64,000 nucleotides of DNA from Octopus bimaculoides (lineage: Eukaryota): assembly GCF_001194135.2 (NCBI RefSeq), contig NC_068986.1, positions 45,718,409 through 45,782,408 of the forward strand, in the 5' to 3' direction. A program made the position numbers and the translations under genes. This document shows, one piece after another, positions 6,804-61,037 of this stretch. Under the pieces are notes generated by a model that saw nothing but the letters and a program-made list of their open reading frames with translations, searched no databases and was not told the origin of the DNA. Each line of letters opens with the position of its first letter. Position 1 is the first letter of the stretch.

Positions 6804-6892
6804 TTAGGAAAGTGAAATATATCTCTCTAGCATCTGAACAGTTAGTAAAGCAAGAATTATTATTGAGAACATTGCATTCCGGCTTGCAGCGC
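6804..6892 (-). CDS. Terminal coding exon: (G)[31 protein letters not shown]-signal-like or short TM tail
   Basis: Acceptor ttttttttttcttttgtag; phase 1 matches B6; small residues G-A-A-S then ~16 hydrophobic residues; TAA at 6806-6804. Confidence 0.86.
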
Positions 6893-9800
6893 CTACAAAA
6901 GAAAAAAAAATACATATGAACATCAACGAATTTTGTTTTTGAGGAAGTATCATATTTAATAAAGCCAGTAAAAAGTTGTTGTTTGTCTATATGTTACGTT
7001 TTTCTTCTATGAACAACAGCAAATTCAGTTAAAAACTAAAAACCAAGAATGTAAAAATATATATTCATTGAACAAGTTTCAGGCTGATGTAGTGCATGAT
7101 ATTTTGGGAATCATGAACAAATAACAACTGTTTTAAAGAAATATAAAGAAGTGAAATAGAGAGAAACAAAAACTACTGAGGCTATGTATAAATTTTATTA
7201 ATTATGACTCTTCACAAGAAGTATAACATTGTTAGAAATAGCAGCCAAATACCCTTCAAGTTTCAACCTACTAAGGTAGTAACTGTTGCAGAGAGTTCAG
7301 AATGGCAAAAAATTCGGCAACTGACAAAACAGCGTCGTTAGGGTAATGATTGGACCTAGAGGGGTTGTGAATATTTAAGTCCCTGCCGAACGTGACTTCA
7401 GAAGTGATAATGTAACATAGATGTTAAAGAAAGAGAAGGGGAGAGAGAAAGAGAGTGAGAGAAAGAATGAGAGAGAGAGAGCTGGAAGGGAGAAGAATAA
7501 TTGATAGTGATTGGAAGAGATCAGGGAGTTGTAGAAATAGTAAATGAGATTAAAGTGATGAGGAAGGGTAACTTTGAGTCAGAGTAAGTGGAATATAATG
7601 CTGCCTGGAAGCTAAAGGTTTTGTGTTGCAGAAAAGCTGTAATGACTTGTGTGTAAGGGAGTGAGTAATAACGTGTAGAATCCAGGTCGATTCGTTTTTA
7701 TAATTCTATTCTAAATTGCATACACTACTATTTAATTCACCTTATTTTCGCGTTAATCACACCGTCAATCACCTTGATTTTGTCTTACGAAAAATAATGA
7801 ATTACTTACCATCACATTCCAGAAGTTCGCTATATTCCTTACTCCCCTCACATTTGGATTTATCAATACAGTCACGTACTTCTTTATAATACCTAGGAAG
7901 AGCGAGAAAAGAAAACATATTGTTGAAGCGATAGAATTTGCATTGAAATACGACACTACTCACAATGTTTTCCTTGTGTTCTTTAATTAATCCTTTGTCT
8001 GTCTTGTGCATCACTTGAGATTCACAGGATGTCTGTCCTTAACCACCATGCACCATATATGTTGCACATTCGCAATATTTACAATCACCAATGTAATTTG
8101 GAACTTAAAGGATAGCTTTGTATTACTCAGGACGTTTGAAGAAAGAGCTAAAGAAAAGTTTGAATACAAGCGTGGACGATTATGACAAACATGAAAATGC
8201 TTTGGACAAGCAAAAGAATAAAATAATCTATATTTTCCGATACGACTTTATTTTATCGACCCTGAGAGGATGAAAGACAGGATTTGAAATCAGAATTATA
8301 GAGCCGAAAGAAATACCAGAAGGTATATGTCCAATACTAACGTTCCTGCTAGTACGCCGCCTCTTTATTTTGTTTTACGCATGAAACCAGCACTTATGAG
8401 GGGATGGGTTTGTTGAAACGATCGGCTCAAGAGCATAATTGTCATTTTATTTTCTTGATCGCAGAGATATGAAAGGCAAAGTTCCCTTTGCGGGATTTGA
8501 AGTGAGAACGCAAAGGTTTGGAACAAATACAGCAAGGCAATTTCTCTGATGCTCAAACGTTTCTACTGCCCTTTGCCAAAATGATGACCTCTTTATTAAC
8601 CACAAAATTGATAAAGATATCAAGGCCAGCACAAGACGATGTGATATGGGATTACATAAAAAAATGTAAACAAGAGAATTATCTAAAAATAAACACAAAG
8701 ATTCAAAGAACAATTTCCCAGCATAGGAGAACCTCTGAGGACTACTCGTGGAAGCCCTACAAAAATCAAGGTCTGTCTCATCACTTGTCTTGGACAAGTG
8801 TCCTCTCACAACTACCATTCCCCAATTTACAGTCGCACGCTTAAAGCACGCCCGTTCCTTTGATGTGGGTAAAAAGCTTTAATGTTATTTGTGCCCTCGC
8901 ACAAGTGACACTTTGTCCTTCTACTCTCAACAACCACGTGAAGGTTTGTGCAATCAGGTAGCGTTATGAAGTTAGAGATGGCCTCGATATTTGGCAGATC
9001 TGCCTGTGTTAACAACTCCACATGTTCTTCAGTATTCTCAATATCTGCAGAATACTGGCTTTCTCTTTTATGTCAAAGAGAACCGCTTCCACCAACCAGC
9101 GGATGTTGATTTCTGGTGGCATATTTAATATTCTTATTTTAAACACACTTCAACCAAAGTAAATGGGGCTGAGGATGAGTTTAACACTCGTTAGGGTGGT
9201 TGTTGAGTGCTTTTTGGCCTTTTCTTCTGAGGTAAACCTCACTTCCATTTTTTACTCTTGGCTATGTAAGTTTTGCACTTCCAAATTGGTGCCAAACATT
9301 TTACTATCTGCTGGTGTGTTTCCTACTCTGTTCTACTTCTTGCTCAAGTTTCGTATAAAGCTGTCCGCAAATTAGCAACTTGCTGGACCGATCTAGGAAC
9401 ATTCAGCGCCGCATTTCACCCACATTTCTCCAACATTCATTTTGCACTTTAAAATTCATTTTCGTCAAAAATGTTGGTGGTGGTGGGTTTGATGTGGCCA
9501 AAAGCGGTGGTTTTTGGAGGTGACAGTGTTCTCGCTAGTGTTATTTTTGATTTTTGTTGTCATTCATCGCTTTTGTTGTTCCTGAGATGGCACATACTGA
9601 AAGTTTTAGCAGCGGAAAGTTACTTTCATGTTACCTTCAATGTTACTTTCATGTTGTTGTTGTTTTTGCTGCTGCTGTTGATGTCACTGACTTTTACAAT
9701 TTGGCTGTTTTGATTTGCGGATAACTGGTTCTTCTTTTCAGCGGCACAACAATCATCATCTGCCATTTTTATTATTAAACAAAAATTGATGTGCTTGTTA

Positions 9801-10365: not shown

Positions 10366-10429
<64 letters not shown>

Positions 10430-10704
10430 CAACAACAACAACAACAATAATAATAATAATAATAATAATAATGGTTTCCAATTTTTCCACAAGAGCAGCC
10501 ATTTTGGGGAAGCAGTGTTTCATTGGTAGGTAATTTATTAGTACGTAATTTATCGACACCGAAAGGATGAAAAGCAAAGTCGACCTCGGCGGAATTTGAA
10601 CTCAGAACATAGAACAGACGAAATATCGCAAAGCATTTCGCCCGGCGTACAAACGATTATGCCAACTCTCCGCCTTGATGATGATGATAATGATGATGAT
10701 GATG

Positions 10705-10747
<43 letters not shown>

Positions 10748-11207: not shown

Positions 11208-11274
<67 letters not shown>

Positions 11275-12537: not shown

Positions 12538-12570
<33 letters not shown>

Positions 12571-13242: not shown

Positions 13243-13275
<33 letters not shown>

Positions 13276-13927: not shown

Positions 13928-16900
13928 CTCTTCCAACGTAGGCATAACATCTCACAGTTGAGTGGAAGAGACTACACGATTATGTTCACCGCAGTGTTTG
14001 ACGGGTTCTTTATTTTATCACCTTTGGAGTGATGAAAGCAAAGTTCACCTCAGCAAACGTGAAATCAAAAGGTAAAGAATTGTAACAAATAATGCAAAGC
14101 ATTTTATTACATACTCTAAAGAGGATCTTTTTTAAAACGGGGCCACATTTTTCATTAATGTTTTACGTAGTGTTTTTGGTACCGAAAGACTTTCAAACTT
14201 CGTATACTTATCTATTTTGTGTTATAGAACAGAAAAATATTTTTGTATTCGAATTTATTTCATGTAAAAAATTGTCTTATTTCGATAATTTCAACCAATC
14301 ACTGACGTCCATTCAGCCGATATACATTAAGTGCCGACTACATAAACAAACGATTCTTCGTTTTATTTGCTTTTTTCATTTTAAATTTGCTTTAACCCTA
14401 ACCCTAACTCTAACCCTAACCCTAACCCTAACGCTAACCCTAGGGTTAGGCTTAGGGTTAGAGTTAGGGTTAGGCTTAGGGTTAGAGTTAGGGTTAGGGT
14501 TAGAGTTAATTGTTTCAGAATCGTTTGTTTATGTAGTCGGCACTTAATGTATATCGGCTGAATGGACGTCAGTGATTGGTTGAAATTACAGAAATACGAC
14601 AACTTTAACATGGAATAATTTATGGATTTCTTTTTTTTTTAAGAAGACTAAGAGAAAAAGATGTTTTATATGACACATTCTACCAGTGTTCCAAGTTTCA
14701 AAGTGTTTCGTTAATGAAAAATGTGGCCCCCGTTTTAAAAAAGATCCTCTAAAGATTTTGCCATTCGTCTGCCCACGGCATCTTAAATAATAAAAATAAC
14801 ACTACAGTCGAGGTTAAAAGTTTGAAACATTTTTTTACAAACTAAAATTGTTATGTTCAAGTACAATTCGATTCAAATATACAAGATATATATTTCAACA
14901 TCAAATATAAAAATTCTAATTTTCAGACCTATGCTCCAAACTTTTGGCCCAGTAATATTATATTGCAAATTAAATATAACTTTGGCCATTTAATATAAAA
15001 ATTCTAATTTTTAGACCTATGTTCTAATCGTTTGGCCACAACTAATACCAAAAGTAAATTGTGTTTGAAATTTGTGGGATGGTATAGTTTCTTACTGTAT
15101 ATTTTACAATATCTTATTTAATGTCTCAGATGACTTGTTTCAAATACTAGCAATATAAAGTTTCTTTTCCCTTCATCTCCTTTTGCAAGCAGTGAAACTT
15201 GAAAAAATATGAGACACATTTCTTCCTTGAATATAACAATTTAGCCCACTCTTAAGTAAAACATTGAATTACATTACTTTTAATGAGTTACATATATGAA
15301 TTAAGAATGGAATACCGTCACCAAGCAGAGTTGTGATAGATGCACAATATGAAGATAAAGTCTTCAAGTAGTTCCTCAAAAGCACATTAGTCTATATCAG
15401 GGGTTTTCAAACTTTTTGACTTGCGGACCCCTTTATATTTCAAGCTTTACCTTAGGGACCCCCTTATAAACGCTTATGAAATTTATACATAAATATTTGC
15501 TTAAAATAACATATATTTTTACATTTATTTATTTAACAGTATTTAACAAATTGGTTTATTGTCAATTAAAAGATTTCGATTAAAAAACATATATAAAATC
15601 AAATTGCCCATAAAAAGTATTTGCTGTCTACGGACCCCCTGTCTTGTCCTTGCGGACCCCCTGTGGTCCGCGGACCACAATTTGAAAACCCCTGGTCTAT
15701 ATGATCCGTATTTCATAAAAATTAAGATATAACGAATGATATTAAAAGTAGTATAAATGAAACTAGATATCATGCAAGTCCTTATCTGAATGTCTCTTTT
15801 ATGAAGTTATATTACTACATTGAATGTCTTTTGGAGGATATGGTTCTATATTTACCCGCATTGCTCTTCTCTTGTGCTGTTTAGTGGTTGTTTCAAAGTA
15901 CGACTACACTTATCAAATGCATCACCGTTGCAACTGGTTTCTGCAAAAGCAAAAAATAAAGAAATTGCGTGTATTGAACAAAACAAATATCAACATATTT
16001 CAGTTCTTAAGTTGGGGAATATTCAATTATTTATAACCAATAATAGAGAACAACATTTAAATGTGTTTAACCATACGCTTGTGTTTGTGTGTTGGTGTGT
16101 GTGTATGTGTGCGTGTGACTGAGCCTATAATTCAACTTTGTAAAAACATTTATATGTTCATGTATATGTGTGTGTACACACACACACAAACATACATTCA
16201 CACACACAGAAACATACACTCACAAACACAGAAACATACACTCACACACAGAAACATACACTCACACACAGAGAAACATACACTCACACACATACATGAA
16301 TATTGTTTATTTACAGCACGTGTTTTGAATCATATATACAGGTATGTCATATTTTCCGTTTGTTCGCTTTTTATTTAATCCTCGCTCAGACGCAGATGCA
16401 CTCTGTATCGACAGCAGATTGCATTCCAAGAATGCAGAATGATACCCTTTAGTGAACATATTGAGAAATGCGCAAAACAAATGCTATCACAATTTGTAAT
16501 CTTTCCATTCTATCAATGTGCCATTGGAACACCAACACAAATTAGATTAAATAAGGAAACCTTCTTCATTGAAAAATATAACCCAAAACTCAACCATTTC
16601 TAACATTTTTAAATAAGGAAACTCACCTCATTGAAAAAAATATAAAGCAAAACCTAACCACTTGTAACACTCTATTCCTTCTAAACCAAATCATGTTAAA
16701 TTAATCAAATCTCACTTATTATCTCCCTTATACCGGAAAAAATCCTTGATTACCTTCCCCTATCTAGAACTCCATATTTTACACCATAGTGAAGACATGA
16801 CACGATACAGGTAGAGAAATGTGAGAAATTTGAAAAGAAAATACGAAACCGGTTATTTCTCCAAAAACAATGTTACTATACTCAAAATTTTATAACATTT

Positions 16901-17909: not shown

Positions 17910-20900
17910 GTTTTCTTCTCTTGAAATCATAAAATTGTTGTAAACTAATGTTATTTCCAATCTTCTGTAAAAACATGTCTGGCCACCTGCTTGGAAACAG
18001 ATGAGGGGTTGTGACATGAATGGCATCCAGGTGTAGAAAATTTGCCTCAGTAAACTCTGATCCACGGATAAATGGACGAGAAAGCAACGATGAATATATA
18101 TAGTATATATGATGAGTATATTGTATGTGGGGTGTTTGCGTCCACATGTACGCTATCCTTGAAGGATTTATAGAAGTGCAACCCAAAGTTTCTTGGACCG
18201 GAAAAATGAATAAGAAAGAAGCTGAATCTGTCTAAGCCATTAAACACTCATAACATTAAAGTCACCTTTGGTAAAGAGTCAGTGAAACTTCAGAAAATTT
18301 ATATAATTTATGTTTCTACAGAGCGCATCATTAATATAACTTTAGATATATATTATTTCTAAAATGCATCAGAAGGCACAAATGGATGCAGTGCTATATC
18401 TGTAGAGTAACTCTGGAGGCGCAATGGCCCAGTGGTTAGGGCAGCGGACTCGCGGTCATAGGATCGCGGTTTCGATTCCCAGACCGGGCGTTGTGAGTGT
18501 TTATTGAGCGAAAACACCTAAAGCTTCGCGAGGCTCCGGCAGGGGATGGTGGCGAACCCTGCTGTACTCTTTCACCATAAATTTCTTTCACTCTTACTTC
18601 CTGTTTCTGTTGTGCCTGTAATTCAAAGGGTCAGCCTTGTCACACTGTGTCACGCTGAATATCTCCGAGAACTACGTTAAGGGTACACGTGTCTGTGGAG
18701 TGCTCAGTCACTTGCACGTTAATTTCACGAGCAGGCTGTTCCGTTGATCGAATCAACTGGAACCCTCACCCTCAACGTCGTAAGCGACGGAGTGCCAATA
18801 ACAATGTAGAGTAACTGAATAAATTTTTTTTTATATATATTTCATAATGGCATTATTAGGTTTTTATGAATGTACTTCAGTCATAGGAGCACAGGAAGAA
18901 TTAGTTGAAAATGCATTTCTGATGCATTTTGACAAAAAGCTACATATAACTACTCTTAAGTATAGCTAAAGCGATATTTCTTGATAATATTGGTTTCAGA
19001 TTTTAGTGTAATCAACCTCAGTGCCCAACTAGTAATTAATTTATTGATTCCGAAAGGATGTAAAGCAATGTTGATATTGGCGGAATTTGAACTCAGAACA
19101 TTTTGTCTGGCGTGCTAACGATTCTTCCAGCTCGTCACTTTTATATAGCTGATAACAGTAACTGACGGTCGTTAGCAGGTCGGGCAAAATATTTAGCGGT
19201 ATTTTGTCCGTCTTCACCTCTTGAGTTCGACTTTACTTGTCATCCTTTCGGAGTCAATAAATTAAGTTCCAGTTAAGTACATGGTGTCGAGGCAATCGAT
19301 TTACCCCTTCTCCTGAAAATTGCTGCCCTGGTGCCAAGATTTGAAGTCAATATTAATAACTCATATGAATTTGAATTTATTATATTTTTTGCTGGAATAT
19401 TTTTATCATTGATCTTTTATTTGTTTCAATTATTTAACTGCGGTCATGCTGGGGCACCGCCTTGGATATTAATATTTTTTAAAAACAATATTTTCCTGGA
19501 GTTATTAAAAATATCATTGAAAGAGGAAATACTTACCACATCCATAAAAAGCGTATTGATCAGAGATTTTCTGTTCTGTAGGACAGACAGTATTCTTTGA
19601 ACATTGAACGGCCAATGATAATTGTCTGTAAAGTAATAAAACAAATTTCTTATCCAAAAGTAAACAATTGTGGAGCTGTCGGTTAAAAAACTATATTTCT
19701 GATCAGCTTTTAATCGCTAGTTACTTTTTACTTAATAGAAATGAGCTTGTAATAAAAGCAAGCATAGATACAGTTCATTTCGATAATGAACAGATCACTT
19801 TATCTTGGAGACTTCAGTTGTTGGCAAAATAGATGTTGAATGTAATCCAATAATAGAAATATATACATTTCAATAGCTACTTCGCACAGTTGGTCCTGAT
19901 GTTTATATCAAAGTATACAACATTGTTAAAAATAAATTGTAGTGCTGCTTTACAAAATACCATTATACAACTTGTGCCATTTTAACAAATCTTTTTTTTT
20001 TTGTCAGCTGAAAATTTACTCTTTTTCAAAAGATCTATGAAACAGTAACTTTGAAAACTATAGTAACACCTCTCCTCTTCTCAACTGTTCTTCACACTCA
20101 TTTTAATGCAAATTATTGAGTATATAATACGTATGTGTAAAAATCCTCAAAGTCAATATCAATTTATTTAATTTGTCTTTTATTAAACTCTCCAAATTAC
20201 ACAACAATGTTTTATTACTGCCATTTTTGAATTTAAGTTACCTACCTGTGGAGGTACATGGCCTAATGGTTAGAGCAGCGGACTCGTGGTCGAGGGATCA
20301 CGAGTTCGAATCTCAGACCTGGTGATGTGTGTGTTTATGAGCAAAACACCTTAGCTCCACGCGGCTCCAGCTGAAAGTAATGGCGAACTTCTGCTGACTC
20401 TTTCGCCACAACTTTCTCTTACTCTACCCTCCTGCATCTAGCAGCCCATCTGCGACGAACCGGTGTCCCGTCCAGGTAGGGAACCTATACGCCAATGAAA
20501 TCGGAAAATTGACCCTTATGAGCCAGGCATGGCTCGAGAAGGAACAAACAACAACACCAAACTATTCCTACTCTGAGCCTTGTCAGAGCCTTCGAACTCT
20601 CAGAATTTGAAACCAATATAATTTTGCTAAATTTTAACAACTATTGATATGCTTACTATGTTCTTATTTTTTGTATCAGAGAAAAGTGCATATGGCTGGA
20701 CATAAACACACTGTTCCAGTGAAGAGATTACTGCATCTAACACACTAGAATTTGAATTCTGTACATAATGCACACACGTACGCACTTATATGCGTGTATG
20801 AATGTGTATATAAGTGTGTGTGTTTGAGTCTGTATATATATATATATGTATATAATGTATGTATGTCTATAAAAATATGTACATATACATTTACACACAC

Positions 20901-37300: not shown

Positions 37301-37772
37301 TGAACCCAGAACGTAGAGACAGGAGAAATGCTGCAAAGTATTTTGTCAAATGCGTTATTGATTCTACCAGCTCGATATTTAATAACTGACTTTTTAGCAT
37401 ATACATATTGGTTTCGCTAATCCAGTATACCCAAATCTATTTTGTGTTTTTCCCCGTATTGGTTTGCTTTCATCATCAATCCAACAGTTACATGCACATA
37501 AAGCCCATCTCCATTGAACAACAACGATAAAGAACAGTGAACGAAAGAGAACAAATCCTTAAACAGTATTCATTAAACAATACGGCTGTACTTTTCTAAA
37601 TTTTGCTTTAAAAAAAAATGCTACTCACCGCAAGTATTTTCTTTGTAAGTTTTCTGCCATTCAGTTGGCATTCTACATGTCCCGTTAGTATAACTTCTTT
37701 TATTCAAAACACAATGATATTCGCTCATCAGATTCCTGATGGAGAGTAAAAGTATGACTAAGTGTTATATAT

Positions 37773-42500: not shown

Positions 42501-45043
42501 GCTAATGCTGCTGTTACATAATTAATGAAACAAATAAGAATATATATGAGATCAAGAGTGAAAATACGTGATAGAGAGGAGAGAAGAAGCGAGAAGTAAG
42601 AGAGATGGTGGATTTTAAGCAACATACATTTCTTTGCATTGTTTTAAAATCTCTTTCCAGTTTAATGTAATTCTCATTCAATGTTATTCTTCGGTTGTAT
42701 TCCTTTTTCTTTTCACTAGGCTTACTCTCACCATAGAAAACGGAACCACAGAGGGTAACAACTTAGAGCTTGTATGCTCGAAGCTTTTCAACATTTTCAA
42801 AGAAATTAAAAACTTTGTTTAGAGTGGATATAAATGTATCAAAGAAGGATCTATGTACTCTACTTTAAGCAATTCCACTCAAGCCGATGTCACTTTCAGG
42901 AACGCAACTCGAAACAGTAATATCACTCTCTTTAATTCAGCAAAACCTAACTAAAGAAAGGAAAAGGGCACTAGAAACTATTAATAATTGATACTATTAT
43001 CATTTATATTTCTGACCACATGTTATTTAAATAATTGCATTATAATGAATAAATTGAATATTAGGGTCTGTGGTTGTTGTTGTTTGAACTAATTGTATCT
43101 CTGGTTATTGTAAATAAATATCTTTTTGTGAATTGTGTAATATATAAGATTTTATATAAATATCATAAATAATAATTGATCTTAATTGTTATATATAATT
43201 ATACGTGTTTGAGTATAAATATCTAAATTATATAAGGTGGTGCTCGAGTATTGTTACCAAAAGTATAAAGAAGAGAAATATAAGATAACACCATCTCTCA
43301 CACTCACATGCACGCATGTACATAACGTCGCCATTATTATGAGAAATCAAGTGTCCCAGATTTAAATTCTCTCATCTAGATTCGGTATAAAGAAATAGTC
43401 TGATGTCTTTTCGATATAAATCAGAAATAGTCTGTCTTTTCAGTTGACTATATCTCAGCGTTATAAATTTATGCTTTTTGTATCAATGCAAACTTCTCGT
43501 TTTCCCTTTTATCTACACGTATACAAAATATATTCATTTAGTTAGATATTTAAATATATTAATTCACTTACAGACAAACAGTGTCTTTTTCCGTATTTTT
43601 TGGTGCCGTATCACATGCAGCTACATCACTCGAGTTACAATCAATTTCTTAAAAAAATTAAGACCATAAAGAAAAGTATAAAATAAGGTAGACTTTAGTG
43701 GTATACTGAAATAATATAAGAGGAAATTTTAGAATTAGTAATAATTAGATATCTGCATATCGTAGCAAACACACAAATGCTCAATTAACAAGTGTTAAAA
43801 CGAAAAAAATTTCTAAGTGATAATAGTCAAATCATTCAAAATCAAGTTATTTCTAAAACTATTATATTGATCTCCGTATATTAGTCAAAAACAAAATGAA
43901 AATATACCAAGTGTTTTCTTTTTGATTTTAAAATAATAATTTATGATTTTATTTGAATGGTATACCACCCCGTTTTTTGAAGGCGCGTGGCCTAATAGTT
44001 AGGGCGTTGTAATCACGATAGTTAGATCGTGGTTTCAATTCATAGACTAGCCGGCGTTGTATTCTCGAGAAAATCAATTAATTTCCTGTCCACTCAGCTT
44101 TAAATAATAACCTTGTGACGGATTAGAGTACACGAGTGAGATGGTGACTCAGGAGAATCATCCGAACAGACGTCTTGAGGGCTTACCACGTCGAAGATTT
44201 TTTGATTGATTGATAAGTATAACTTTGAAAGCGTTAGATAAAAGAACTTACTAAGACAAACATCGGTGTAGTACTTGTCCAACAACTCAAAATGCTTGGT
44301 ACAGTCTTGTTGATATAAACAATGTTTCACATAGTTAAGGTCACTAAAAAAGTAAAGATATTTAAATTACCATTCAAAATTTTACATCAACAAAAAACAA
44401 AAGTAACATGTTTTATGTATTTCTAATCATACGTTATCGAATCACTAAGGTCTACATTTGTATGCTCTAAATGAAAGGTTCTCAACAGATAGAGGAGACA
44501 TATGCCCCCACCCACCCCGGGAGCTATTTGGAACTCGAAGGGGTGCCTTTTGGGGAAAGGGACACTAGGGAGGCGTTAAGAGACCTGGGGTGCGAGGTGG
44601 CACTGGAAGTTCCTCAACTTTAATAAGTTTAATTTGAAATTAATGAGTAGTAGCCATATTTTCACGTCTCCGCGACACTCAATTTTAAGAAAACCATGCC
44701 TTTTTGTTTCAAATTTCCAAAAACTTAAAAAATACTTTTTTCCCTTTGACGACACCAAGCAAATTCTAAAAACAGATGAATGGTGACAGACGACTAAAAG
44801 AGAAAAGTAATGAATAAAAGCGAAAAGCTGAATCTGTATGTATGTGTGTATTCATGTGCAAATATATAAAGAATTGTGGTCAGAACTTTGAATCAAACTG
44901 GCTTTTGGGAGTGGTTGATAAGTATGTATCGTGTATGTGTGTGTATGTATGGGTACGTTTGTATGTATATGATTGCGTGTATTACCATCTTGAATTCCTT
45001 TCTGCGATTGAACTTAAGTTGGGCTTGGATATGAAAGACCCAA

Positions 45044-53241: not shown

Positions 53242-55876
53242 GGGAGGGAGAGAACGAGAGAGGGAGAGAAGTCACTAGTGCTTCCTTTTGAATAAGGCAG
53301 AGACATGGAGGAGGAAAGCAACTGAGAACGAAGAGAAACTCCCTAGAAAATAGTAAAAATGAATTCATGTTACATAATTACAATATTAGGTATAGCTGCA
53401 GGCGGTTTCGTGAGATGTCCGCATGGATAACAATAAAAGCATGATTATACCCAAATGAATCCAAACGTTCCTTGATAGCATCAATGTTACTTGGCATATT
53501 AGAGGCAGCGGTATTGTCGGAAGGTACCGAAAACCATATAATTTCCAAATGACAGTGTCCTATAGCGTAAGCTAAGGAAAAATATGTGTTATGTTTATAT
53601 AGGAGTAAGTACTATTCTTGTTTAGTCTCAGATCATCTCATAGTGCTTTCCTATCTAAAGTATTGGGTCATTCCATAAATAATGCGGTTTTTTCAATTGC
53701 ATGAACTAGAAGTCGGAGGGGGAGGGATAAACTACTTGCATCAACTTGCTATAAAAATTGGTAGTAATTTTACCTTGTGCTTATTCTTAGTGCAAATTTT
53801 GAAGAGTGTTGTTCGATTTTAACAGTTATTTTTTCAAAGCTATAATGGAAGTGACAAAGGAGCATATTCGGCATATTTTGCTTTATGAGCTCAATAAAGG
53901 CAACAACGCAACGGAAAGCGTGAGGAATATTAATGCATATGTGGGGATCGGACAATAAGCGTAAGTCAGTGTCAACGGTGGTTCCAGAAATTAGGCCTCG
54001 CCCTAGAAGATCTGTAGAGCTCGACGAGGACGTCTTGCAAACTCTGGTGGAACAAAATTCCATCGTAACTGTTGAGGAACTAGTAGAGAAGGTTGGATTT
54101 GCTCATTCAGTCATTCATCGACACCTGCAAATTGAGTCAACGGGTTCCTCACAAACTTTCCGTGTCTAATCGCGCGCAGAGAGTGAATGTCTGCTCTTCT
54201 TTGCTGTCACGTCTCACGAATGAAACTTCTTTTTAGACCGAATAGTGTCTGGTGACAAGAAATGGTTTCACTATAAAAATGTCAAGCGCTGAAGACAGTA
54301 ATTAGGGAAAGGAGAAACACTGGCATCCCAGGCTAAAGAAGTTGGTGTTATCTGTTTGGTGAGAAAAAAAAAAACGTTTAGTCTACTTTGAACTTTTAAA
54401 CTCAAACCAAACGATAACAAAGGAGATCTGCTGCGAGCAGCTTGAGCGGATTAAGTCAGTGCTAGAAGAAAAGCGACTATCTTTAGTTTCAAGAGTATTC
54501 TTCCATCAGGATAATGCTCGGCCACATACAGTGAAGATGACATTCCAAAGGTTAGAGCAGCTTTAATGGGAAACGATGCCCTACCCACCATATTCATCAG
54601 ACATTGCCCCATCTGATTATCATTCATTCTGCAGTCTTTAAATACATTTGGACGGAAAAAGATATGAATTCTGTAGACGAGGTCAGAACAGTACTGGAAG
54701 AGTATGTTTCGTCACAGACAAGTGAATTTTGGAAGAGAGGCCTTGCAAGTCTACCAGATAGATGGAAGAGCATTGTTGAAAATGAGGGAGAGTATGTTTT
54801 AGATTAAAAAAGAACTTTGTTTATCTTAATTCTGAAAAATAAAAGATGCATAAAAAAGCGCGTTATTTATGGGATGACCCAATAGTTTTGTCTATGTGTT
54901 CTGAATACTTTCGTTTATGTATCGCTAACTATTTGAGACTGATGATATCTGACTTATGTATCAATATTATTTTTTTTATCGTATTCATATCTTCCATCTG
55001 ACTATTTGAATTCACACACATTAAATACATCCAGTAGGGGTTACGTATCACTAGATACTCGATTTTCACATTCAGATAAAAGCGTATAAGAGAATTCTCA
55101 TCGCATAGGTGCAACATTTTTAGTTCATTCTTACAATGTATTTCTACTAATTCTTTTCGTGTTTTATAGAACAATTGTGATATAATTGTGATAACAAATC
55201 ACGTAGGCTGAACTATTGTTAATGGTTTTGACTGTGATCTCTTCGTTACGTTATTTTGAGAGCAGCTAGTTCAATATCATCTTAACTTACATGAAATACA
55301 TGACATGGAAATGCATGACAATTCGGATATTGTATCTAATCTTACCTGCATGAATTTAACTTTGAACTTCTACAAATCTGAATGTTACTTGTTTTACAAT
55401 CTTTGGCTTCCTCCTCTATAAAGATAACAAAAAATAAAAGCAATGTCATAATTTGAAAGTATAGCCGTTACGTTCGTAATTATATAAATGCGCACGTTTC
55501 GATTCGAAAACTGATGAAAGGGATCTTATTTCATCAGAACTATGTTCCAGCACACAAGTCTTTACTCTCAATGGCTGCTATGCGTGACTGACTTTGAACT
55601 GGTTGATCACCTTCCCTATTCTCTTGATTTGTCCTCATCTAACTATCATCTATTACCCAGCATGAACAAACACTTGACTAGGAACCAGTGTTGCAGAGCT
55701 GATAACGTCATATCTGCTGATCAACAGGACGAAACTTCTTCACTAATGGGTTCCAAACACTGCAACACCAATGAAAGAAGTGCGTGAACCAAAAGAGGGA
55801 CTATGTAGAAAAATAAGCCTCATTTGGTCACATTCCATGAGAGTATCTTGATCAGCCTATAGACGTTTCAACTACC

Positions 55877-55933
<57 letters not shown>

Positions 55934-58900
55934 GTATATATATTTTACCTTTTACTTGTGTCAGTCATTAGATTGCAACCATGCTGAAACACAGCCCTGA
56001 AGAAATTTAGTAGAAAGAATTGACTTCAATACTTACTTTCCTAAGCTTAGTACTTATTCTATCAGACACTTTTGCTGAACTGCTAAGTTACGGGGACATA
56101 AATACACCAATATCGGTTGTCAAGTGTTGGTGGTAGGGGACAAACACCCACACACATGTATATATAAATAAATATGTATATACGACGGGATTCTTCCAGT
56201 TTCCATATAGAAAATCCACTCAAAAGGCTTTGGTCGGCGAAGAAAGCTTCTTACCAGATAGCAATACCTATATACGAGAGGATGCTGAAAGGTTCCTGGC
56301 TTTAAGAGTATTGCGAAAGGCCTGTTTGGAAACCCAACTTTCTGAGTTCTTCTACAGGACTTGAAAGAACTGAAGGCCCGCTGTAGTTAGTGTGCTTATC
56401 TGAGAGAGAACTACATTGAATAAAATCATAGTTTACTGATCCTCTTGCATTTTCTTTTCACCCAAAGCCAGGAACTTTTCAGCACATCCTCGTACATATA
56501 ATTTTCAAAAATTCTCCTGAGTCACGGCTGAAGGAAATATCTCCGTCGAAAATTTATTATAAAAGCCCATCAACTGTTCTACTTTACCTGTGTAAAATGT
56601 GGGCATGGGGGTATGATATCTATGTATATTTCCTATTTAGTATTGGGGAAGTTTCATTTATAAGGACGTACTCCCGTATTTGTCTTAGGGTTGGGTCTTT
56701 TGGGTGCTTGGATAAGATGCGGATGTCAAGTTGACCCAAGTTGCCTCCATGCTGGTCTTTGGCATGTTGGTAGAGTATGGAGGACTGTTTTTTGCTGTTG
56801 TTTTGCGAGAAGCCTCTGATACTTATCAGTAGAGTTAGTGTGACGGTCGACTTCACTACAATAGTGAACATCCGGGATCTATTATTTGTGGCAGTCTTGT
56901 GTGTGGGTGTGCGTGGCTTAGTTTTGTTTGTAACCAGGCCAACTGCTACATTATTTTGTATACCACACTTAGACATTTTGCTGCTCACGCTCCATCTACA
57001 AACAGTTTTTTGATGGTTTTTCTGTACTGTATGTGTGCATTAGGATGTGGATTCCTCTGGGGATGGTTTCATTCTATCTAGAGTAGAGAGTGATTTTGCC
57101 ATAAGATACGTTTGGCTTGAGTTTTGGCTGCTTAAAGCGGTAGTTATTCACTATGCCAGCAGACACCTTTTATGTAGAATTTACAGTTGATACGTGCTTC
57201 ATGTACCGTTTTCTTGTTTATTTTACATTTCCTTTTTGTTTTAAGTTTAAATTCGGTTTCATCACTCTTTCTTTTCCTTCGCTACTTTGGGAGGTGGCGC
57301 TGGGGCTGCTTCTCTTGGGAGCTTTTGTTTTCTTTTCTTTCTGCTTTTACATCTCTTTAAATATGAATATTCTCGTTCATGGTTGCACTATTGTTGTCGC
57401 CCTCCTTATTGAGCTTTCCACATGTGGCTGCCACACTGGTATTTTTCTCTGTATCAGGCGTTTCACTTGGAGGCTCACCACTTTTAAAAATGGTATCTAG
57501 TTTGTTCAAGTGTGACCTAATAAGTGCATATGAGCGGATGAATTCACCACACTATTTGCGTCAAGGATCTGATAAACCCATTGCTTTTCAGTACTGCTGC
57601 AATAAGCTAGTTGGGTGAATCATTTTCGGCTATGGTCCAAGTTCTAAGGAACAAATCTTCTTCAGTAGTCGTCCAGTTTCTCGATGTCTTTGCTGCGCTA
57701 TTTATCTTCTTCCTTGTGGTGGTTGTGTCACTGCATGTATGATTTGTTCGTAGTTGCAGAGTGAGAGAGAGGGGGAGGAAGAGAGAGAGCGAAGAAATGA
57801 TGAGGATATGAGTGGAGAGTGAGCAGGGAGTAACTTGAAACAGAGGCGGAAGCAAGTAAAAGGGGAGAGAAGAGGGTCAAAAAGGAGATGAAATGGATAT
57901 GTCAGGACAAAGAGAGTAAGTGGATGAAAGACAGAGCAGGCTGAGACAGAGAGAAGATCAAGTGGCGGGGGAGAAGGGACCGAGAGAAGAGAGGATGAAA
58001 ATAGTGAGAGGAGAGCAACAAGAGGGGGAGAGAAAGAGAGAGGAGATTAAATGGGGGAGAGTTAAGACTCAGTAAGTATATGAAGGGTTATAAAGGGGTA
58101 AAGTGCGACTAAGGTTGGGAGGAGAGTGCATAAAGAAAAGAAAGTGAATAAATTGAGAGAGAAATGAAGAGAGCGTTACTCGAAATATAGAGCAATCCTA
58201 GTTGAGTAAAGATGGAAGGACACATATATACATATATGTGTATAGAGACAGGGAGAACAATTAAATGTTCATTGCTTTATATATTAATTGATAGTTGATC
58301 TCAGCATGATCAAGTCTCAGTTTTAGAGTCAGTACTTTCCCGCTAATTCGAGTTTGGAAGTTATGCAATAGCTTCTAATTTGGAGCAAGATATGATATCC
58401 CATCTCACTTCATAGTTGAGAATCGAATACTAGATATTTGAATTATATGAATTATATACTCACTGCATTTCAGGCGATTAAGTTCCTGATTTCCACGACT
58501 TTTTATCTGTCCATTGAGTATTTCAGTACAGAAGTGAATATTCTGAGCACGTCTGTAAAAGATTATTAATAACAATTAATATCAGATACCATTATTTCAT
58601 TATAACAGGCACACAGAAACAGCAACCGAATATCCCACAAACCACACCCCACATTCTTAAAAAAATTAGACTTTCAATAATTTATATTATGTCTGGAATA
58701 CAAACATTTGGAACACTTTTTATCATAGATCTGCTTAACCAATGTTGACATATGACTAAACAACAACGAATTCCACCTTTCAATTTGGTCTCGTGTCAGT
58801 GGTTCATAACTGTTTGCGTATTGTCTGGATGAAATCAGTGTATCTCAATGGTAACTAATTTTTTTATTTCTCGTCATTGAAAGAATCTCATAGACTCATT

Positions 58901-61037
58901 TCTCAAACTTCACAGTCCTCTTCTAAGATTCTTCAGTATCAATTTTTCTTCGTTGAAATGCATCTAGGAAATGTAGTGAGTGAATGTTTACCTACGAGTT
59001 TGTTTATTCTAACAGTTTGCTCATCACATGGTCCTGAGGGTCTTTATATTGCAGTATCCCATTTACGGATAAAAACCATAATCAATAGATACCGTTGTCA
59101 AACCTGAGATGTATTCACGTATTCATATAGTTATTGAATATTTTAAAAAGCTAGCTAATGCTGTGGTGGTTCGCTGCAAACTTATTCTGAAGGAACAAAC
59201 TATTTCTATTTGTTCCTCAATTTTGTGAGGCTTCGTAGTACGTTCGTAGCACTAGTGGTAACAACCGACTCTGACATCTAAATTCACAGTAGGACAAGCT
59301 TATAAATAGCAACTATTATCTTTATTGAAAAATGAAGAGGACTGTATAATTTCTTTTCTTCTTCCTTGTTTCTCAGGGCAGGTGTATATATACTGATAAA
59401 AAGGCAAAAATACAAGGGAATTTAAAAACCATTCGCTTACACTTAAAAACTAGATTAATTCCATGGATCTGATTTTCTCTCCCGATCTTCCTTGAAAAAC
59501 GTGTGGCCATCGCCTAGTTCACAAGGTTTAATCATCTATACTAATCTTGCCCTACCAGTTTTATAGTTACGAGGTCTGATTTCTTGAAAAGACTTGTTCT
59601 GTTGCCTCTGTCAAATGAAGTATGCATGTTCTATGCATAACAAATGAGTGCTTCCTTTGTTTTTCCTTCCGTTTAATCTTGTCCACAAAAACTAGGCTAA
59701 CTACTTGCCTTGATCAGCTGGCTATTTGTTATTTTTGTGATTTCTGCTGCTGTAGTTTGTTGTTTGGCCTCAGGCCTAGCCTCATCAATACTTTTTAGAT
59801 AATAATTCGAATTGGTTGCTAGTCAAGCAGTTAAGTGACCACGTAATGGCTTCTCCATTGACTCGTTAGTTTGAAGAACAGCTAACGTTTCGAACGTTTT
59901 TGACAGTCCTTTGTGCTACTAATGAGCATTAACAATTCTAAAGAAACTTTCACATTAGTCACCAGAATACACCTAACTTCGTTTCTGCTATGGGGTACAG
60001 CGAAGAGAGACTGCACAACCACACGCAGCGGTATGCAGGTCCAAAACTATGACTTCCAGTTTTGATATCACCTGTCGTCATGCTCTTTTTCTATCATAAT
60101 GGATCTTTATCGGGGTGGCGGGAGAGGAGTACTCAGAATTTTGTCCGTTAAGAATAACACTCGATAACTCCTACTCTCGTGGTCATAAAGGCTAGACTCA
60201 ACAATATTTTTGAACTCGTTATTTCTTTTACCTCAATAGAAGTTGATGTCCATTTTGTTACTTTCATCAAACCAGCATGACGAAATAGTTTTGGCATTCA
60301 GATATGAGCAGTTTCTTATTTTCAGTTGTTTTACATCTGTTGGATTGCCTCTTTTGGACAGCCTATTGAAATGGTTTAGTAGATTGTGTTAACTGATGCA
60401 CGCTATGTTTTCTCGGTAGCATAGATGAGAGATGGTGGAGACCAAATGTGTATGACTTCCTGTCAAATACGTATTCTCAACCCATCAGAGATTCTATACC
60501 TTCTAGAGTCCACATGATTATCAGTAAATAGCATATATATCTTCAGTGTAAGTTGTAAAATATCAAAATATAAGGGAAAATATCCGGAGTGTGGTGCTTA
60601 AGATAACTTGATAGATCGTTTGTTTTTCTTCGGGTTGTTACCTCAACTAATAGTATTAAATGTTGCATCCTGACATTAATTCAGTCAACCCAAAGTTTCT
60701 TGAATTGGGATCTCAGTATCAAGTTGACCACGATTTCTATACATCGCGCTTGGATTCATTCATTGTTTAGTCACAAAACAAGTATACACCAATCTATGTG
60801 GGTGCGCATGTGTGTTTATTTTGTGTTTCTGCACGGTTTTTTGTACTTTATTTTTTAGCTTCCTGCGTATTTTTGTATGATTCTGTATTTTCTGTGTTTT
60901 CATTAGATTTTGTTTTTATTTTTCATTGTTTATGTTTATATTTGCTTATACTTACTGGCAATCTGTCTTGGCATAATCGTCTAGACTGTTTCGGCAGTCT
61001 CTGAAGTTTTCTTGATTCAAAAGTATGTTAACGCCAC
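6804..61037 (-). CDS. Spliced gene, 5'-incomplete: secreted/cell-surface protein with six tandem 6-Cys modules and a C-terminal GPI/TM-like hydrophobic tail; join of 13 exons, 1100 nt, ~366 aa
   Basis: 13 minus-strand exons with GT/AG ends. Phases alternate 1-2/2-1 and join with no stop codon. C3-x8 spacing is kept across every A/B junction. 32 Cys (even number); 5 N-x-S/T sequons (NSS, NGT, NNT, NMS, NST). Confidence 0.88.
7810..7892 (-). CDS. Exon B6 (phase 2-1): [27 protein letters not shown]
   Basis: Acceptor ttttcttttctcgctcttcctag, donor tg|gtaagt; 83 nt; inside ORF-track entry 7802..8014. Confidence 0.9.
8830..9770 (-). mobile_element. L1/Tx1-like ORF1 remnant with a degenerate zinc knuckle
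   Basis: [26 protein letters not shown] resembles VVVEGRxxxCxxCxxxxHxxxxCP; [13 protein letters not shown]. Confidence 0.45.
9980..11198 (-). mobile_element. Five head-to-tail SINE-B copies (9980-10146, 10157-10367, 10470-10676, 10755-10951, 10982-11198) separated by (AAT)n
   Basis: Minus-strand tRNA-like head (tggcagaatcgttagc ... gagttcaaatt) and central gcctttcatcctttcggggtcgataaa..agtaccag motif in each copy. Confidence 0.9.
11317..11838. mobile_element. Unclassified ~540-bp interspersed repeat (family D), copy 1, flanked by (AAT)n
   Basis: Aligns along its length with 13304-13850. Confidence 0.8.
11855..12069 (-). mobile_element. SINE family B
   Basis: Same head and core as the cluster copies. 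Confidence 0.88.
12080..12505 (+). mobile_element. R4/Dong-clade non-LTR retrotransposon 3' end (restriction-like endonuclease plus 3'UTR), (AAT)n tail
   Basis: [50 protein letters not shown], i.e. PD..D RLE motif; ends aaaactactg(aat)n. Confidence 0.8.
12572..12905. other. Assembly gap; other gaps at 17748-17873, 21242-21251, 35235-35244, 45112-45696, 48481-48490, 61147-61693
   Basis: N runs, mostly flanked by microsatellites. Confidence 1.
12906..13177 (+). mobile_element. Second R4/Dong 3'-end copy, 5' side cut by assembly gap
   Basis: Closely similar to 12238-12505; [39 protein letters not shown]. Confidence 0.8.
13304..13850. mobile_element. Family D repeat, copy 2, flanked by (AAT)n
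   Basis: aatgccctgatgcagtacc ... gcatgcactgctttctcactc(aat)n. Confidence 0.8.
14123..14747. mobile_element. MITE with GGATC termini, 8-bp TSD (TCTAAAGA), nested inner inverted repeat and (TAACCC)n/(GGGTTA)n core; Merlin-like by termini (inference)
   Basis: TIR ggatcttttttaaaacgggg(g)ccacatttttcattaa at both ends; TSD at 14115-14122 and 14748-14755. Confidence 0.85.
15398..15694. mobile_element. hAT-type MITE, 297 bp
   Basis: TIR caggggttttcaaa / tttgaaaacccctg; perfect 8-bp TSD gtctatat at 15390-15397 and 15695-15702. Confidence 0.92.
15856..15940 (-). CDS. Exon A6 (phase 1-2): [27 protein letters not shown]
   Basis: Acceptor tttctttattttttgcttttgcag, donor gg|gtaaat; 85 nt. Confidence 0.9.
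16381..16900 (+). mobile_element. Penelope-like element: GIY-YIG C-terminus and 3' region
   Basis: [50 protein letters not shown]. Confidence 0.65.
17458..17747 (-). mobile_element. SINE family A, cut by gap
   Basis: Reverse complement of the family A body, including CORE-like ttgggcaagtgtcttctactatagcc. Confidence 0.88.
18413..18804 (+). mobile_element. SINE family C (tRNA head), full length
   Basis: A/B-box-like tggcccagtggttag / gtttcgattccc; 12-bp TSD tgtagagtaact at 18401-18412 and 18805-18816. Confidence 0.93.
19010..19350. mobile_element. Two SINE-B copies back to back (about 19010-19140 minus, 19170-19350 plus)
   Basis: gaaaggatgtaaagc..gaatttgaactcag followed by gactttacttgtcatcctttcggagtcaataaa. 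Confidence 0.75.
19537..19625 (-). CDS. Exon B5 (phase 2-1): [29 protein letters not shown]
   Basis: Acceptor ttgttttattactttacag, donor tg|gtaagt; 89 nt. Confidence 0.88.
20248..20555 (+). mobile_element. tRNA-head SINE related to family C but with a different 3' tail
   Basis: tggcctaatggttagagcagcggactcg..gttcgaatctc head; tail ..ggctcgagaaggaacaaacaacaac. Confidence 0.8.
20980..21600. repeat. Two diverged direct copies (20980-21241, 21369-21600) with a 10-N gap between them
   Basis: taat.cccact.ctggaatgacctgatcttc ... ataaacag repeated. Confidence 0.85.
22365..22505 (-). mobile_element. SINE family A, 5' part
   Basis: gggcttctttcagtttccg..aagacacttgctcaagg. Confidence 0.8.
22850..23300 (+). 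mobile_element. Two tandem SINE-B copies ending in (ATT)n
   Basis: gcggcgagctggcagaatc..gagttcaaattccgccgagg..ctttcatcctttcggggttgattaaataagcaccag..agtagaaaggattatt, twice. Confidence 0.88.
23801..24188 (+). mobile_element. SINE family C, full length
   Basis: Closely similar to 18413-18804; 9-bp TSD cacttcaac. Confidence 0.93.
24625..25065 (+). mobile_element. SINE family A, diverged
   Basis: ttggtaaatgccttctactttagcc..gtaacttagtggtttggcaaaagag..caatgactaaaacaag. Confidence 0.78.
25450..26080 (-). mobile_element. Degenerate RTE-like RT remnant
   Basis: [15 protein letters not shown] resembles ESKGLRVNxxKTKVL; heavily decayed. Confidence 0.4.
26335..26416 (-). CDS. Exon A5 (phase 1-2): [26 protein letters not shown]
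   Basis: Acceptor ttctacattctttttgtcag, weaker donor aa|gtgtgt; 82 nt. Confidence 0.83.
27816..29214 (-). mobile_element. Mariner element, defective, carrying a 217-bp foreign insert
   Basis: TIRs ttaggttgtctggaaagttccgagcattt / aaatgctcagaactttcagacaatttaa; TA on the left; [28 protein letters not shown]. Confidence 0.9.
28236..28452 (+). repeat. Exact 217-bp copy of 27040-27256
   Basis: Base-by-base identity from ttttatgattagtg to gagacat. Confidence 0.95.
30239..30327 (-). CDS. Exon B4 (phase 2-1): [29 protein letters not shown]
   Basis: Acceptor atattttttag, donor tg|gtaagc; 89 nt; Arg at C4 position. Confidence 0.85.
31760..32270 (-). mobile_element. CR1/L2-group LINE 3' remnant
   Basis: [33 protein letters not shown], the post-RT region typical of CR1-group elements. 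Confidence 0.7.
32736..32802 (-). CDS. Exon A4 (phase 1-2): [21 protein letters not shown]
   Basis: Acceptor ccattccaatcacag, donor ga|gtaagt; 67 nt; has C1 and C3, lacks C2. Confidence 0.83.
33285..33488 (+). mobile_element. Short interspersed repeat ending ctggggctaaacaacagcaa; related tail at 29-51
   Basis: Shared tail motif ctggggctaaa. Confidence 0.45.
34967..35512. mobile_element. Second copy of the GGATC/telomere-core MITE, opposite orientation, 8-bp TSD GAAAACTG
   Basis: TSD at 34959-34966 and 35513-35520; arms are reverse complements of copy 1; core lost in a 10-N gap. Confidence 0.88.
35868..37069 (-). mobile_element. Tc1/mariner element of maT/DD37D type, defective
   Basis: cagggtg...caccctg ends flanked by TA; [40 protein letters not shown]. 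Confidence 0.75.
37170..37378 (-). mobile_element. SINE family B
   Basis: ttttggcataaggccagcaattttg..gaatttgaacccagaacgtag. Confidence 0.85.
37629..37735 (-). CDS. Exon B3 (phase 2-1): [35 protein letters not shown]
   Basis: Acceptor cttttactctccatcag, donor cg|gtgagt; 107 nt. Confidence 0.88.
37838..38004. repeat. Long near-perfect inverted repeat (~70-bp arms, 14-nt loop)
   Basis: aacaacgcgaggacgtgatacagatattgtgttactggacgctc / gagcgtccagtaacacaatatccgtatcacgtcctcgcgttgtt. Confidence 0.92.
38607..40149 (+). mobile_element. Non-autonomous Helitron with N-terminal repeat ORF fragment (39746 onward) and nested SINE
   Basis: 5' a|TC in (TA)n; 3' hairpin ccgtcc-aat-ggacgg (40120-40134) then CTAG|t; [15 protein letters not shown] repeats as in Helitron ORF N-termini. 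Confidence 0.78.
39094..39476 (+). mobile_element. SINE family C inserted in the Helitron
   Basis: Closely similar to 18413-18804. Confidence 0.93.
41530..42100 (+). repeat. Degenerate GT-rich low-complexity tract
   Basis: Cryptic (TG)n variants. Confidence 0.85.
42437..42500. repeat. (CTA)n microsatellite
   Basis: Direct inspection. Confidence 0.95.
43572..43647 (-). CDS. Exon A3 (phase 1-2): [24 protein letters not shown]
   Basis: Acceptor cttaatttttttaag, donor ct|gtaagt; 76 nt. Confidence 0.87.
44252..44343 (-). CDS. Exon B2 (phase 2-1): [30 protein letters not shown]
   Basis: Acceptor atctttacttttttag, donor a|gtaagt; 92 nt; lies inside ORF-track entry 44100..44330. Confidence 0.9.
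45768..46107 (+). mobile_element. SINE family C, diverged
   Basis: ggggcataatggcccagtggttagggcgg..ggaaccctcatcgttgtaaccaacggagtacc. Confidence 0.88.
46831..47900. mobile_element. AT-rich foldback element (arms about 46831-47041 / 47235-47445) with its middle and right arm duplicated in tandem (47495-47897)
   Basis: aaaagttttgaattaagtttttaaagcatc is the reverse complement of gatgctttaaaaacttaattcaaaactttt, which occurs twice. Confidence 0.85.
47905..48285 (-). mobile_element. SINE family A, near full length
   Basis: (ctctttta)n tail, ggagcaccgcctttagtcgagc..gacacttgcccaagatgccacg..gaaccatgtggttgg. Confidence 0.92.
49888..50097 (-). mobile_element. SINE family B
   Basis: atcgaccccgaaaggatgaaaggcaaagtcg..gctaacgtttctgccaattcgccgctt. 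Confidence 0.9.
51160..51756 (+). mobile_element. Penelope-like element GIY-YIG endonuclease remnant
   Basis: [68 protein letters not shown]. Confidence 0.85.
51757..52680 (+). mobile_element. 5'-truncated RLE-type LINE (HERO-like), post-RT region and endonuclease
   Basis: [30 protein letters not shown]; [49 protein letters not shown]. Confidence 0.8.
53138..53268. repeat. (GA)n microsatellite
   Basis: Direct inspection. Confidence 0.95.
53663..54882 (+). mobile_element. Full-length mariner element with frameshifted transposase (ATG 53845)
   Basis: TIRs ttgggtcattccataaataa / ttatttatgggatgacccaa with TA both sides; [34 protein letters not shown]. Confidence 0.93.
55346..55415 (-). CDS. 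Exon A2 (phase 1-2): [22 protein letters not shown]
   Basis: Acceptor ttttattttttgttatctttatag, donor ag|gtaaga; 70 nt. Confidence 0.88.
55560..55880 (+). mobile_element. Mariner 3' fragment
   Basis: [22 protein letters not shown]; ends ccctcg|ta. Confidence 0.8.
55945..56260 (-). mobile_element. SINE family A
   Basis: ttacttgtgtcagtcatt..gctaagttacggggac..cactcaaaaggctttggtcggc. Confidence 0.85.
56275..56492. mobile_element. Mariner-derived MITE, 218 bp
   Basis: TIRs cgagaggatgctgaaaggttcctggcttt / aaagccaggaacttttcagcacatcctcg; TA flanks. Confidence 0.9.
56600..57700 (-). mobile_element. Penelope-like element remnant (GIY-YIG C-terminus and upstream ORF)
   Basis: [46 protein letters not shown]. 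Confidence 0.7.
58464..58552 (-). CDS. Exon B1 (phase 2-1): [29 protein letters not shown]
   Basis: Acceptor aatcttttacag, donor a|gtgagt; 89 nt; has C4 and C6, Gly at C5 position. Confidence 0.85.
59480..60560 (-). mobile_element. Degenerate RTE/BovB-like RT remnant
   Basis: MLFTDN (LFADD-like), [13 protein letters not shown] remnants in the expected order. Confidence 0.5.
60956..61037 (-). CDS. Exon A1 (phase 1-2): [27 protein letters not shown]
   Basis: Acceptor ttgttgttagttgtag, donor ca|gtaagt; 82 nt; has C2 and C3, lacks C1. Confidence 0.82.

Follow-up and report, generated by a model that had tools for sequence, protein, structure and literature searches.

LOC106882236 of Octopus bimaculoides and a clustered octopod gene family for predicted cysteine-rich helical-repeat surface proteins

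The GFRalpha-like domain is defined by ten conserved disulfide-forming cysteines (PMC4349606). In the GFRalpha1 reference, these cysteines follow the spacing 6, 5, 10, 8-9, 4-7, 21-27, 1, 4-9, 11, which includes a CxC doublet. Members of the GDNF/GAS1 (GFRalpha-like) superfamily act as glycosylphosphatidylinositol (GPI)-anchored co-receptors: GFRalpha presents secreted ligands of the GDNF family to the signalling receptor RET, and GAS1 does so with Hedgehog. The gene examined here, LOC106882236 of Octopus bimaculoides, encodes a protein that shares the overall design of GFRalpha and GAS1: a signal peptide, then extracellular cysteine-rich domains in tandem, predicted to be all-alpha, and at the C-terminus a hydrophobic signal that may be of the GPI type. 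It differs in its unit, which is about 55 aa long with six (or four) cysteines, compared to about 90 aa and ten cysteines for the GFRalpha-like domain. The gene lies on the minus strand of a stretch of 64,000 nucleotides, referred to as the window (contig NC_068986.1 of assembly GCF_001194135.2, positions 45,718,409 to 45,782,408). It matches part of CM046606.1 of GCA_001194135.2 in reversed orientation. RefSeq lists its product as "uncharacterized protein LOC106882236" and UniProt as "GDNF/GAS1 domain-containing protein".

A preliminary description of the window, made from its letters, proposed a hidden gene for a membrane-anchored protein of six cysteine modules. After following up this proposal, we consider it rather probable that the product is a secreted, N-glycosylated, all-alpha, membrane-anchored rod that serves as a lineage-specific binding protein or co-receptor and is one of three clustered paralogs in an octopod-restricted family.

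Gene structure and cysteine modules

The gene turned out to be annotated already. In a protein search, the spliced model matched a 385-aa O. bimaculoides protein with 100% identity over 100% of the model, and both RefSeq (LOC106882236 / XP_014788326.1) and UniProt (A0A0L8FN98) hold the identical protein. With the acceptor at 61043, the exons in the window translate exactly to residues 18-385 of XP_014788326.1. The span is coding exons 2-14 of the annotated gene. The exon chain first proposed was correct for its 13 exons and needed correction at the 5' end, where the signal-peptide exon falls outside the window and the first acceptor is 61043 instead of 61037. The annotated protein begins with the signal peptide MISRMTFISLVAFLLFAVVG. 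The signal-peptide exon was sought inside the window and not found there; the first coding exon, MISRMTFISLVAFLLFA and one further base, is situated some 6.3 kb past window position 64000, at 10001-10052 of locus sequence L001. Tandem acceptors (ttag/TTGTAG/G, window 61037-61043) are present at the start of coding exon 2. Acceptors 61043 and 61037 are 6 nt apart and both in frame, and the orthologs have the two additional residues. This arrangement could permit NAGNAG-like alternative splicing, with or without Val-Gly beside the predicted signal-peptide cleavage site.

Exons were found as AG...GT intervals filtered by phase and cysteine content. Window positions are used throughout and, since the gene is on the minus strand, the exons run from 61043 to 6804. 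A plain six-frame motif search was dropped because TG/CA microsatellites, which translate as CVCV, flooded the output, and a scan constrained by splice sites and phase was used instead. The 13 exons of 67-107 nt in the preliminary description were all recovered, every site being AG/GT, and they join into a single frame that stays open over 54 kb to the TAA at 6806-6804. Splice phases alternate strictly, with A exons of the form 2+3n+2 and B exons of the form 1+3n+1. Each module is encoded by one such exon pair, with a phase-2 intron directly after the third cysteine (C3) and a phase-1 intron between modules. The x8 spacing between C3 and C4 does span the A/B junctions, as had been claimed, and all six A exons stop exactly 2 nt past the C3 codon. 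A symmetric (1-1) exon pair per module implies that the modules arose by tandem duplication of that pair. A scan for the strict A/B cysteine register gave eight matches on the minus strand, one on the plus strand and none in 20 shuffles. The eight minus-strand matches coincide with the A and B exons of the four six-cysteine modules and with no others, and the two types alternate.

That the gene is real and has many exons follows from the identity to XP_014788326.1, the canonical splice sites, the phase pattern, the exon boundaries of a paralog, the collinear relatives (three in O. sinensis and one in Argonauta hians) and the motif scan.

The protein has 32 cysteines in six tandem modules of 52-61 aa. 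The number of modules had been predicted correctly, but only four of them have six cysteines, and modules 1 and 4 have four. Similarly, the proposed repeat C-x6/7-C-x7..15-C-x8-C-x5-C-x14-C is exact in modules 2 and 5, and the other four modules deviate from it. In module 3 the x5 spacing is extended to x11, and in module 6 the x14 spacing is shortened to x11. C1 is absent from module 1, where Gly occupies the C5 position; module 4 has no C2 and carries Arg at the C4 position. Neither the 32 cysteines nor the four "missing" positions vary among five aligned octopod proteins, wherever these cover them (seven relatives were found), which indicates that the four-cysteine state of modules 1 and 4 is constitutive. 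Paired loss of C1 and C5 in one module and of C2 and C4 in another implies a putative disulfide scheme of C1-C5, C2-C4 and hence C3-C6. As C4 and C5 were lost separately, in different modules, they would not be bonded to each other. When the modules were compared with one another by hhalign, only weak scores were obtained (best P 0.001, for modules 3 and 4), and little but the cysteines is still shared between modules.

Going from 5' to 3' on the minus strand, coding exon 2 (60956..61043) contains the end of the signal peptide and the A half of module 1; its 5' limit here is the RefSeq acceptor. The B half is in exon 3 (58464..58552, 89 nt), which has the Gly at C5 and the invariant motif SRGNQELxRLKC. 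Module 2 is formed by exon 4 (55346..55415, 70 nt, C-x7-C-x7-C) and exon 5 (44252..44343, 92 nt, x7-C-x5-C-x14-C), the latter following an 11-kb intron with two assembly gaps. Extra B and A exons between 55346 and 44343 were considered and none exist; the A exon at 55415 joins the B exon at 44343 directly, as in the annotated protein. Exon 6 (43572..43647, 76 nt, sequon NSS) and exon 7 (37629..37735, 107 nt, C-x11-C-x14-C, sequon NGT) make up module 3. For module 4, the A half is in exon 8 (32736..32802, 67 nt), where the loss of C2 leaves C-x17-C and the sequon is NNT, and the B half is in exon 9 (30239..30327, 89 nt), which has the Arg at C4 and the sequon NMS. Module 5 consists of exon 10 (26335..26416, 82 nt, with a GTGTGT donor) and exon 11 (19537..19625, 89 nt). 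Module 6 consists of exon 12 (15856..15940, 85 nt), with a conserved motif starting L-K and the sequon NST, and exon 13 (7810..7892, 83 nt). The NST sequon and most other motif positions of exon 12 are invariant in the octopod family, and this region is the one matched by the repeats of a remote protein discussed below. The terminal coding exon 14 (6804..6892) encodes G-A-A-S, a hydrophobic stretch of 16-17 residues, the conserved 7-residue polar end ERYISLS and the stop at 6806-6804. The five N-glycosylation sequons and the hydrophobic C-terminus anticipated earlier are thus both present in the spliced translation.

All six flagged assembly gaps, also that at 61147-61693, are intronic, and no gap comes closer than 104 nt to an exon. 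Collinear O. sinensis proteins of 380-385 aa have no extra module, and hence no coding exon is hidden in the gaps.

The likely 3' untranslated region, whose extent is inferred, covers 6280..6803 on the minus strand and has AATAAA/ATTAAA signals at 6562, 6550, 6522, 6500, 6294 and 6280. A (GAA)n microsatellite of about 1 kb (window 5215-6239, 344 copies, 69% matches) begins about 570 nt downstream of the stop, just past the AATAAA cluster. Several other repeats were seen in and near the gene. Intron 8 has two relics of the N-terminal helix-turn-helix of mariner/Mos1-type transposases (Pfam HTH_48), at 27398-27556 and 28908-29108 on the minus strand (E 8e-5 and 6.7e-9), and intron 1 has a mariner-like stretch at about 62592-62846, minus strand, with no Pfam match. 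A 456-bp unit is tandemly duplicated in intron 3 (47039-47918, 1.9 copies, 92% matches), and a 69-bp tandem repeat occupies 39834-40036 in intron 5. Near-identical stretches of about 130 nt (12333-12462 and 13005-13134), with identical "splice-like" flanks, lie on either side of the gap at 12572-12905 and represent a dispersed repeat or, alternatively, a local duplication made during assembly around that gap. Finally, an open reading frame of 127 aa at 3781-4164, minus strand, had no Pfam match at E<=0.01; its FRPVSLFNVELKALSKVL stretch resembles the reverse-transcriptase motif of retrotransposons without long terminal repeats.

A small octopod family and its possible remote relatives

Seven octopod proteins (P0001 to P0007) make up the family: three from O. 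bimaculoides, three from O. sinensis and one from Argonauta hians. An exhaustive HMMER profile search of 1.84 billion representative proteins returned only four cluster representatives, which comprise the octopod proteins and one remote protein, P0008; no nematode or arthropod protein was among them. The family had been proposed as a cephalopod one. It is real, but this range was too broad, as matches were obtained in Octopus and Argonauta only. No relatives were found in squid, cuttlefish or nautilus, as far as their proteins are in the libraries searched. A literature search by locus names and accession numbers yielded no paper that mentions any of them, so the family is undescribed in the searched literature and in Pfam.

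The three O. bimaculoides paralogs are located within about 260 kb (45.53-45.79 Mb of CM046606.1), at 45.53, 45.64 and 45.73 Mb. LOC106882236 is a minus-strand gene that converges with the middle one, and the two others, LOC106871163 and LOC128248134, are plus-strand genes. The three O. sinensis genes pair 1:1 with those of O. bimaculoides, with ortholog identities of only 66, 81 and 61%. In the seven-sequence alignment, invariant positions other than cysteine amount to 42% in module 1, 39% in the tail and 12-15% in modules 2-5, so that conservation is highest in module 1 and the tail and lowest in modules 2-5. These comparisons indicate that the family is small, rapidly evolving and, as seen so far, restricted to octopods.

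Paralog P0004 (LOC106871163) has the same exon boundaries as LOC106882236. Its annotated coding sequence ends in "...ECSGK*" by read-through of an intact G/GTAAGT donor (locus sequence L002, 49150-49200). We considered whether P0004 is a secreted isoform and rejected this, because the annotation reads through an intact donor. It is thus the annotation that lacks the tail exon, while the design of the gene includes one, and the RefSeq model appears truncated at its 3' end.

The preliminary description held that the cysteine spacing does not fit EGF, Ly6, Kazal, saposin or insect OBP patterns, and the octopod proteins indeed have no Pfam-A match. Searches against Pfam-A, including EGF, Ly6/uPAR, Kazal, saposin, insect OBP, ShK and Lustrin_cystein, gave only sub-threshold chance matches (GCHY-1, Sld3_N, Imm50 and others). 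The lead offered instead, nematode CPG4/DUF19 (PF01579), found no sequence support, as none of the seven octopod proteins matched it at E<=10; the likeness put forward was that both are extracellular cysteine-rich domains of invertebrates with a C-x8-C-x5/6-C stretch. A full-length match to a characterised family had been named as an outcome that would remove the novelty, and the identical full-length match obtained is to the annotated protein, which is uncharacterised.

P0008 (EukProt g1403.t1) was a remote match with a library-wide E of 2e-9. All five of its repeats align to octopus module 6 over C-x7..10-C-x2-L-x2-P-x-N/D-x-T-x4-C-x-Y-Y-K-x4-C. The likeness is limited to module 6, amounts to about 15 bits per repeat and comes with a high composition bias, and the P0008 repeat is of a different build, about 85 aa with eight cysteines including CxC (C-x10-C-x15-C-x8-C-x3-CxC-x22-C-x5-C). 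A homolog search from P0008 gave one further relative only, P0009, a single-exon gene on a Tara Oceans plankton metagenome scaffold (L004). Both proteins have tandem eight-cysteine repeats, a signal-like N-terminus and, like the octopus protein, a hydrophobic C-terminus; both share the motif L-x2-P-x-N-x-T...C-x-YYK with octopus module 6, and neither has a Pfam family. They probably come from planktonic eukaryotes (protists), and the resemblance of P0008 to module 6 is either very remote or convergent.

Predicted fold, membrane anchor and alternative readings

Several features agree with the extracellular, membrane-anchored product first proposed. The protein has a signal peptide, 32 invariant cysteines and N-glycosylation sequons, and its C-terminus carries a predicted hydrophobic anchor signal, which is preceded by small residues and kept in 6 of the 7 relatives. 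The suggestion that it is probably helical is supported by AlphaFold2, which predicts helices only, as judged by DSSP, in two models: full length (predicted local distance difference test, pLDDT, 68) and modules 3-6 with seven sequences (pLDDT 67). C3 and C4 are placed on a long central helix. Both models show a beta-bridge between the residues that adjoin C1 and C5 of module 3, which is consistent with a C1-C5 bond.

In the mechanism that we propose, the protein would enter the endoplasmic reticulum, form 16 disulfides and receive N-glycans; the NST sequon of module 6 is the invariant one. Each module would have a short helix or loop with C1 and C2 and the long central helix with C3 and C4, and the stretch between C5 and C6 would form its third helix. 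On the outer surface of the plasma membrane the protein would form an elongated rod of six such modules, held by either a GPI anchor at G-A-A-S, which is somewhat favoured, or a transmembrane helix of 16-17 residues with a 7-residue tail. It would most probably act as a binding protein or co-receptor, in which the conserved module 1 (SRGNQELxRLKC) and module 6 with the tail could be the interaction and anchoring ends, and the fast-diverging modules 2-5 a spacer or a specificity surface. Four points weigh against this proposal. The models are only moderately confident, with a predicted template modelling score of 0.31-0.43. The collections searched held no transcript-derived copy of the protein. 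The sequence allows both a GPI and a transmembrane anchor, and the conserved polar ERYISLS and the invariant Gln would suit a true transmembrane helix. Finally, the binding or co-receptor role is assigned by analogy only.

Alternative readings of the same protein concern its origin, its anchor and its role. It is nearly an even chance, in our view, that the module of about 55 aa is a new, independently evolved three-helix extracellular fold (C1-C5, C2-C4, C3-C6) that is specified by an exon pair of symmetric phase and has no homology to GFRalpha/GAS1. The cluster would then be a fast-evolving octopod innovation, comparable to a recognition system of a single lineage, such as one for gametes, chemotactile sensing or immunity.

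Another possible explanation for the conserved tail is that the same ectodomain belongs to a type I single-pass protein, an endocytic or recycling receptor in which E-[KR]-Y-I-S-[LF] is a cytoplasmic sorting signal of the YxxPhi type. The polar, charged tail, VQMLE[KR]YIS[LF], is conserved from Octopus to Argonauta, the Gln within the hydrophobic stretch is invariant, and the tail as a whole is about as invariant as module 1, which is unusual for a segment that is cleaved off. However, the hydrophobic stretch is just 16-17 residues long, the run of small residues before it (G-A-A-S) is typical of a GPI omega site, and the Tyr would be only 2-3 residues from the membrane. YxxPhi signals usually tolerate no such closeness. 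We see the type I receptor as a real alternative, though less likely than not.

The protein could also be a divergent true member of the GDNF/GAS1 superfamily and thus a co-receptor of the kind described at the outset. The preliminary description did not consider this family; it is raised by the UniProt name of A0A0L8FN98 and a paralog, which we take to stem, probably, from a match to SMART SM00907. Besides the shared design, there is a loose similarity of cysteine rhythm, C-x6/8-C-x5-C-x10/14-C across both, and the octopus series C3-x8-C4-x5-C5-x14-C6-x3..6-C1'-x6/7-C2' partly resembles the start of the GFRalpha domain, C-x6-C-x5-C-x10-C-x8/9-C-x4..7-C. The best profile-versus-sequence alignment, although non-significant, pairs C4-x5-C5 with the first C-x5-C of GFRalpha1 domain 2 (D2).

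The label was nevertheless not reproduced by the searches that follow. Human GFRalpha1 D2-D3, checked against PDB entry 6q2n_C, was used as a control. It scored 113 bits with Pfam PF02351, for which the gathering score is 22 bits, and P0001-P0007 had no match to this model at E<=10. In the precomputed Pfam annotation, the octopod proteins have no entry, whereas each of the 120 GFRalpha proteins among the matches listed has one. The family profile found no chain at E<=10 among PDB sequences, though many GFRalpha and GFRAL chains are present there, and hhalign against GFRalpha1 gave Prob 0.2%. With a hidden Markov model of GFRalpha D2+D3 and filters off, real octopod sequences scored no higher than shuffled ones. 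Against a profile of 26 GFRalpha sequences, hhalign gave 15.0, within the column-shuffled null of 9-25; this is a weak test of low power, as the D2-versus-D3 control reached only 17.6. Foldseek searches of the PDB with the full-length and M3-M6 models returned generic helical-repeat proteins only, at E>=0.25, and the top 50 contained no GFRalpha; a pLDDT of about 68 and small helical modules weaken these statistics.

The cysteine pattern also argues against membership. The octopus protein has a period of six cysteines and a smallest spacing of 3, without CxC, and no register yields the GFRalpha pattern. The all-alpha fold is found in both AlphaFold2 models, at moderate confidence, but it is generic and not diagnostic. 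The C-x5-C pair of GFRalpha1 (UniProt P56159) is probably an internal disulfide, and octopus C4 and C5, having been lost independently, would not be such a bonded pair. Since two defining features, a match to PF02351 above the gathering score and ten cysteines per domain with a CxC doublet, are both absent, we do not file the octopus protein as a member. By its design it would work in the manner of GFRalpha/GAS1-type co-receptors, but membership in their superfamily seems unlikely to us.

It is also conceivable, though improbable, that the protein, once secreted, has a structural or matrix role, for example in cuticle, egg coat or mucus, with repeats that form a stable rod and do not serve as a receptor. 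Many structural and secretory proteins have tandem disulfide-rich repeats, diverge quickly and are confined to one lineage, and P0004 is annotated without a hydrophobic tail. However, the tail loss of P0004 is an annotation truncation, the other six relatives keep the anchor signal, and the composition lacks the bias of matrix proteins.

We give almost no credence to the exon chain being an artefact of gene prediction or a pseudogene that is not transcribed: RefSeq derived its record computationally, but the frame is intact over 13 exons and 54 kb with every splice site canonical, the 32 cysteines are invariant across genera and paralogs despite 42-66% overall identity, intron positions are kept in a paralog, and the original genome annotation, which is behind the UniProt entry, and RefSeq give the identical protein.

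Meaning of the family for octopod biology

The gene model itself is not new, as it was already in RefSeq and UniProt, and the protein is of a familiar kind, a cysteine-stapled helical-repeat surface glycoprotein. The useful outcome is an uncharacterised, clustered and quickly diverging octopod-restricted family without a Pfam model, whose sole database label (GDNF/GAS1) may be a false positive of the cysteine pattern. The value of the analysis is in annotation and hypothesis generation, and it has no bearing on a long-standing open question. The constitutive four-cysteine modules predict a disulfide map from sequence that is easily tested. Should the module indeed be a fold of its own, a new domain family would be justified, and the protein would be one more candidate among the few octopod-specific surface proteins that possibly underlie lineage-specific cell recognition.
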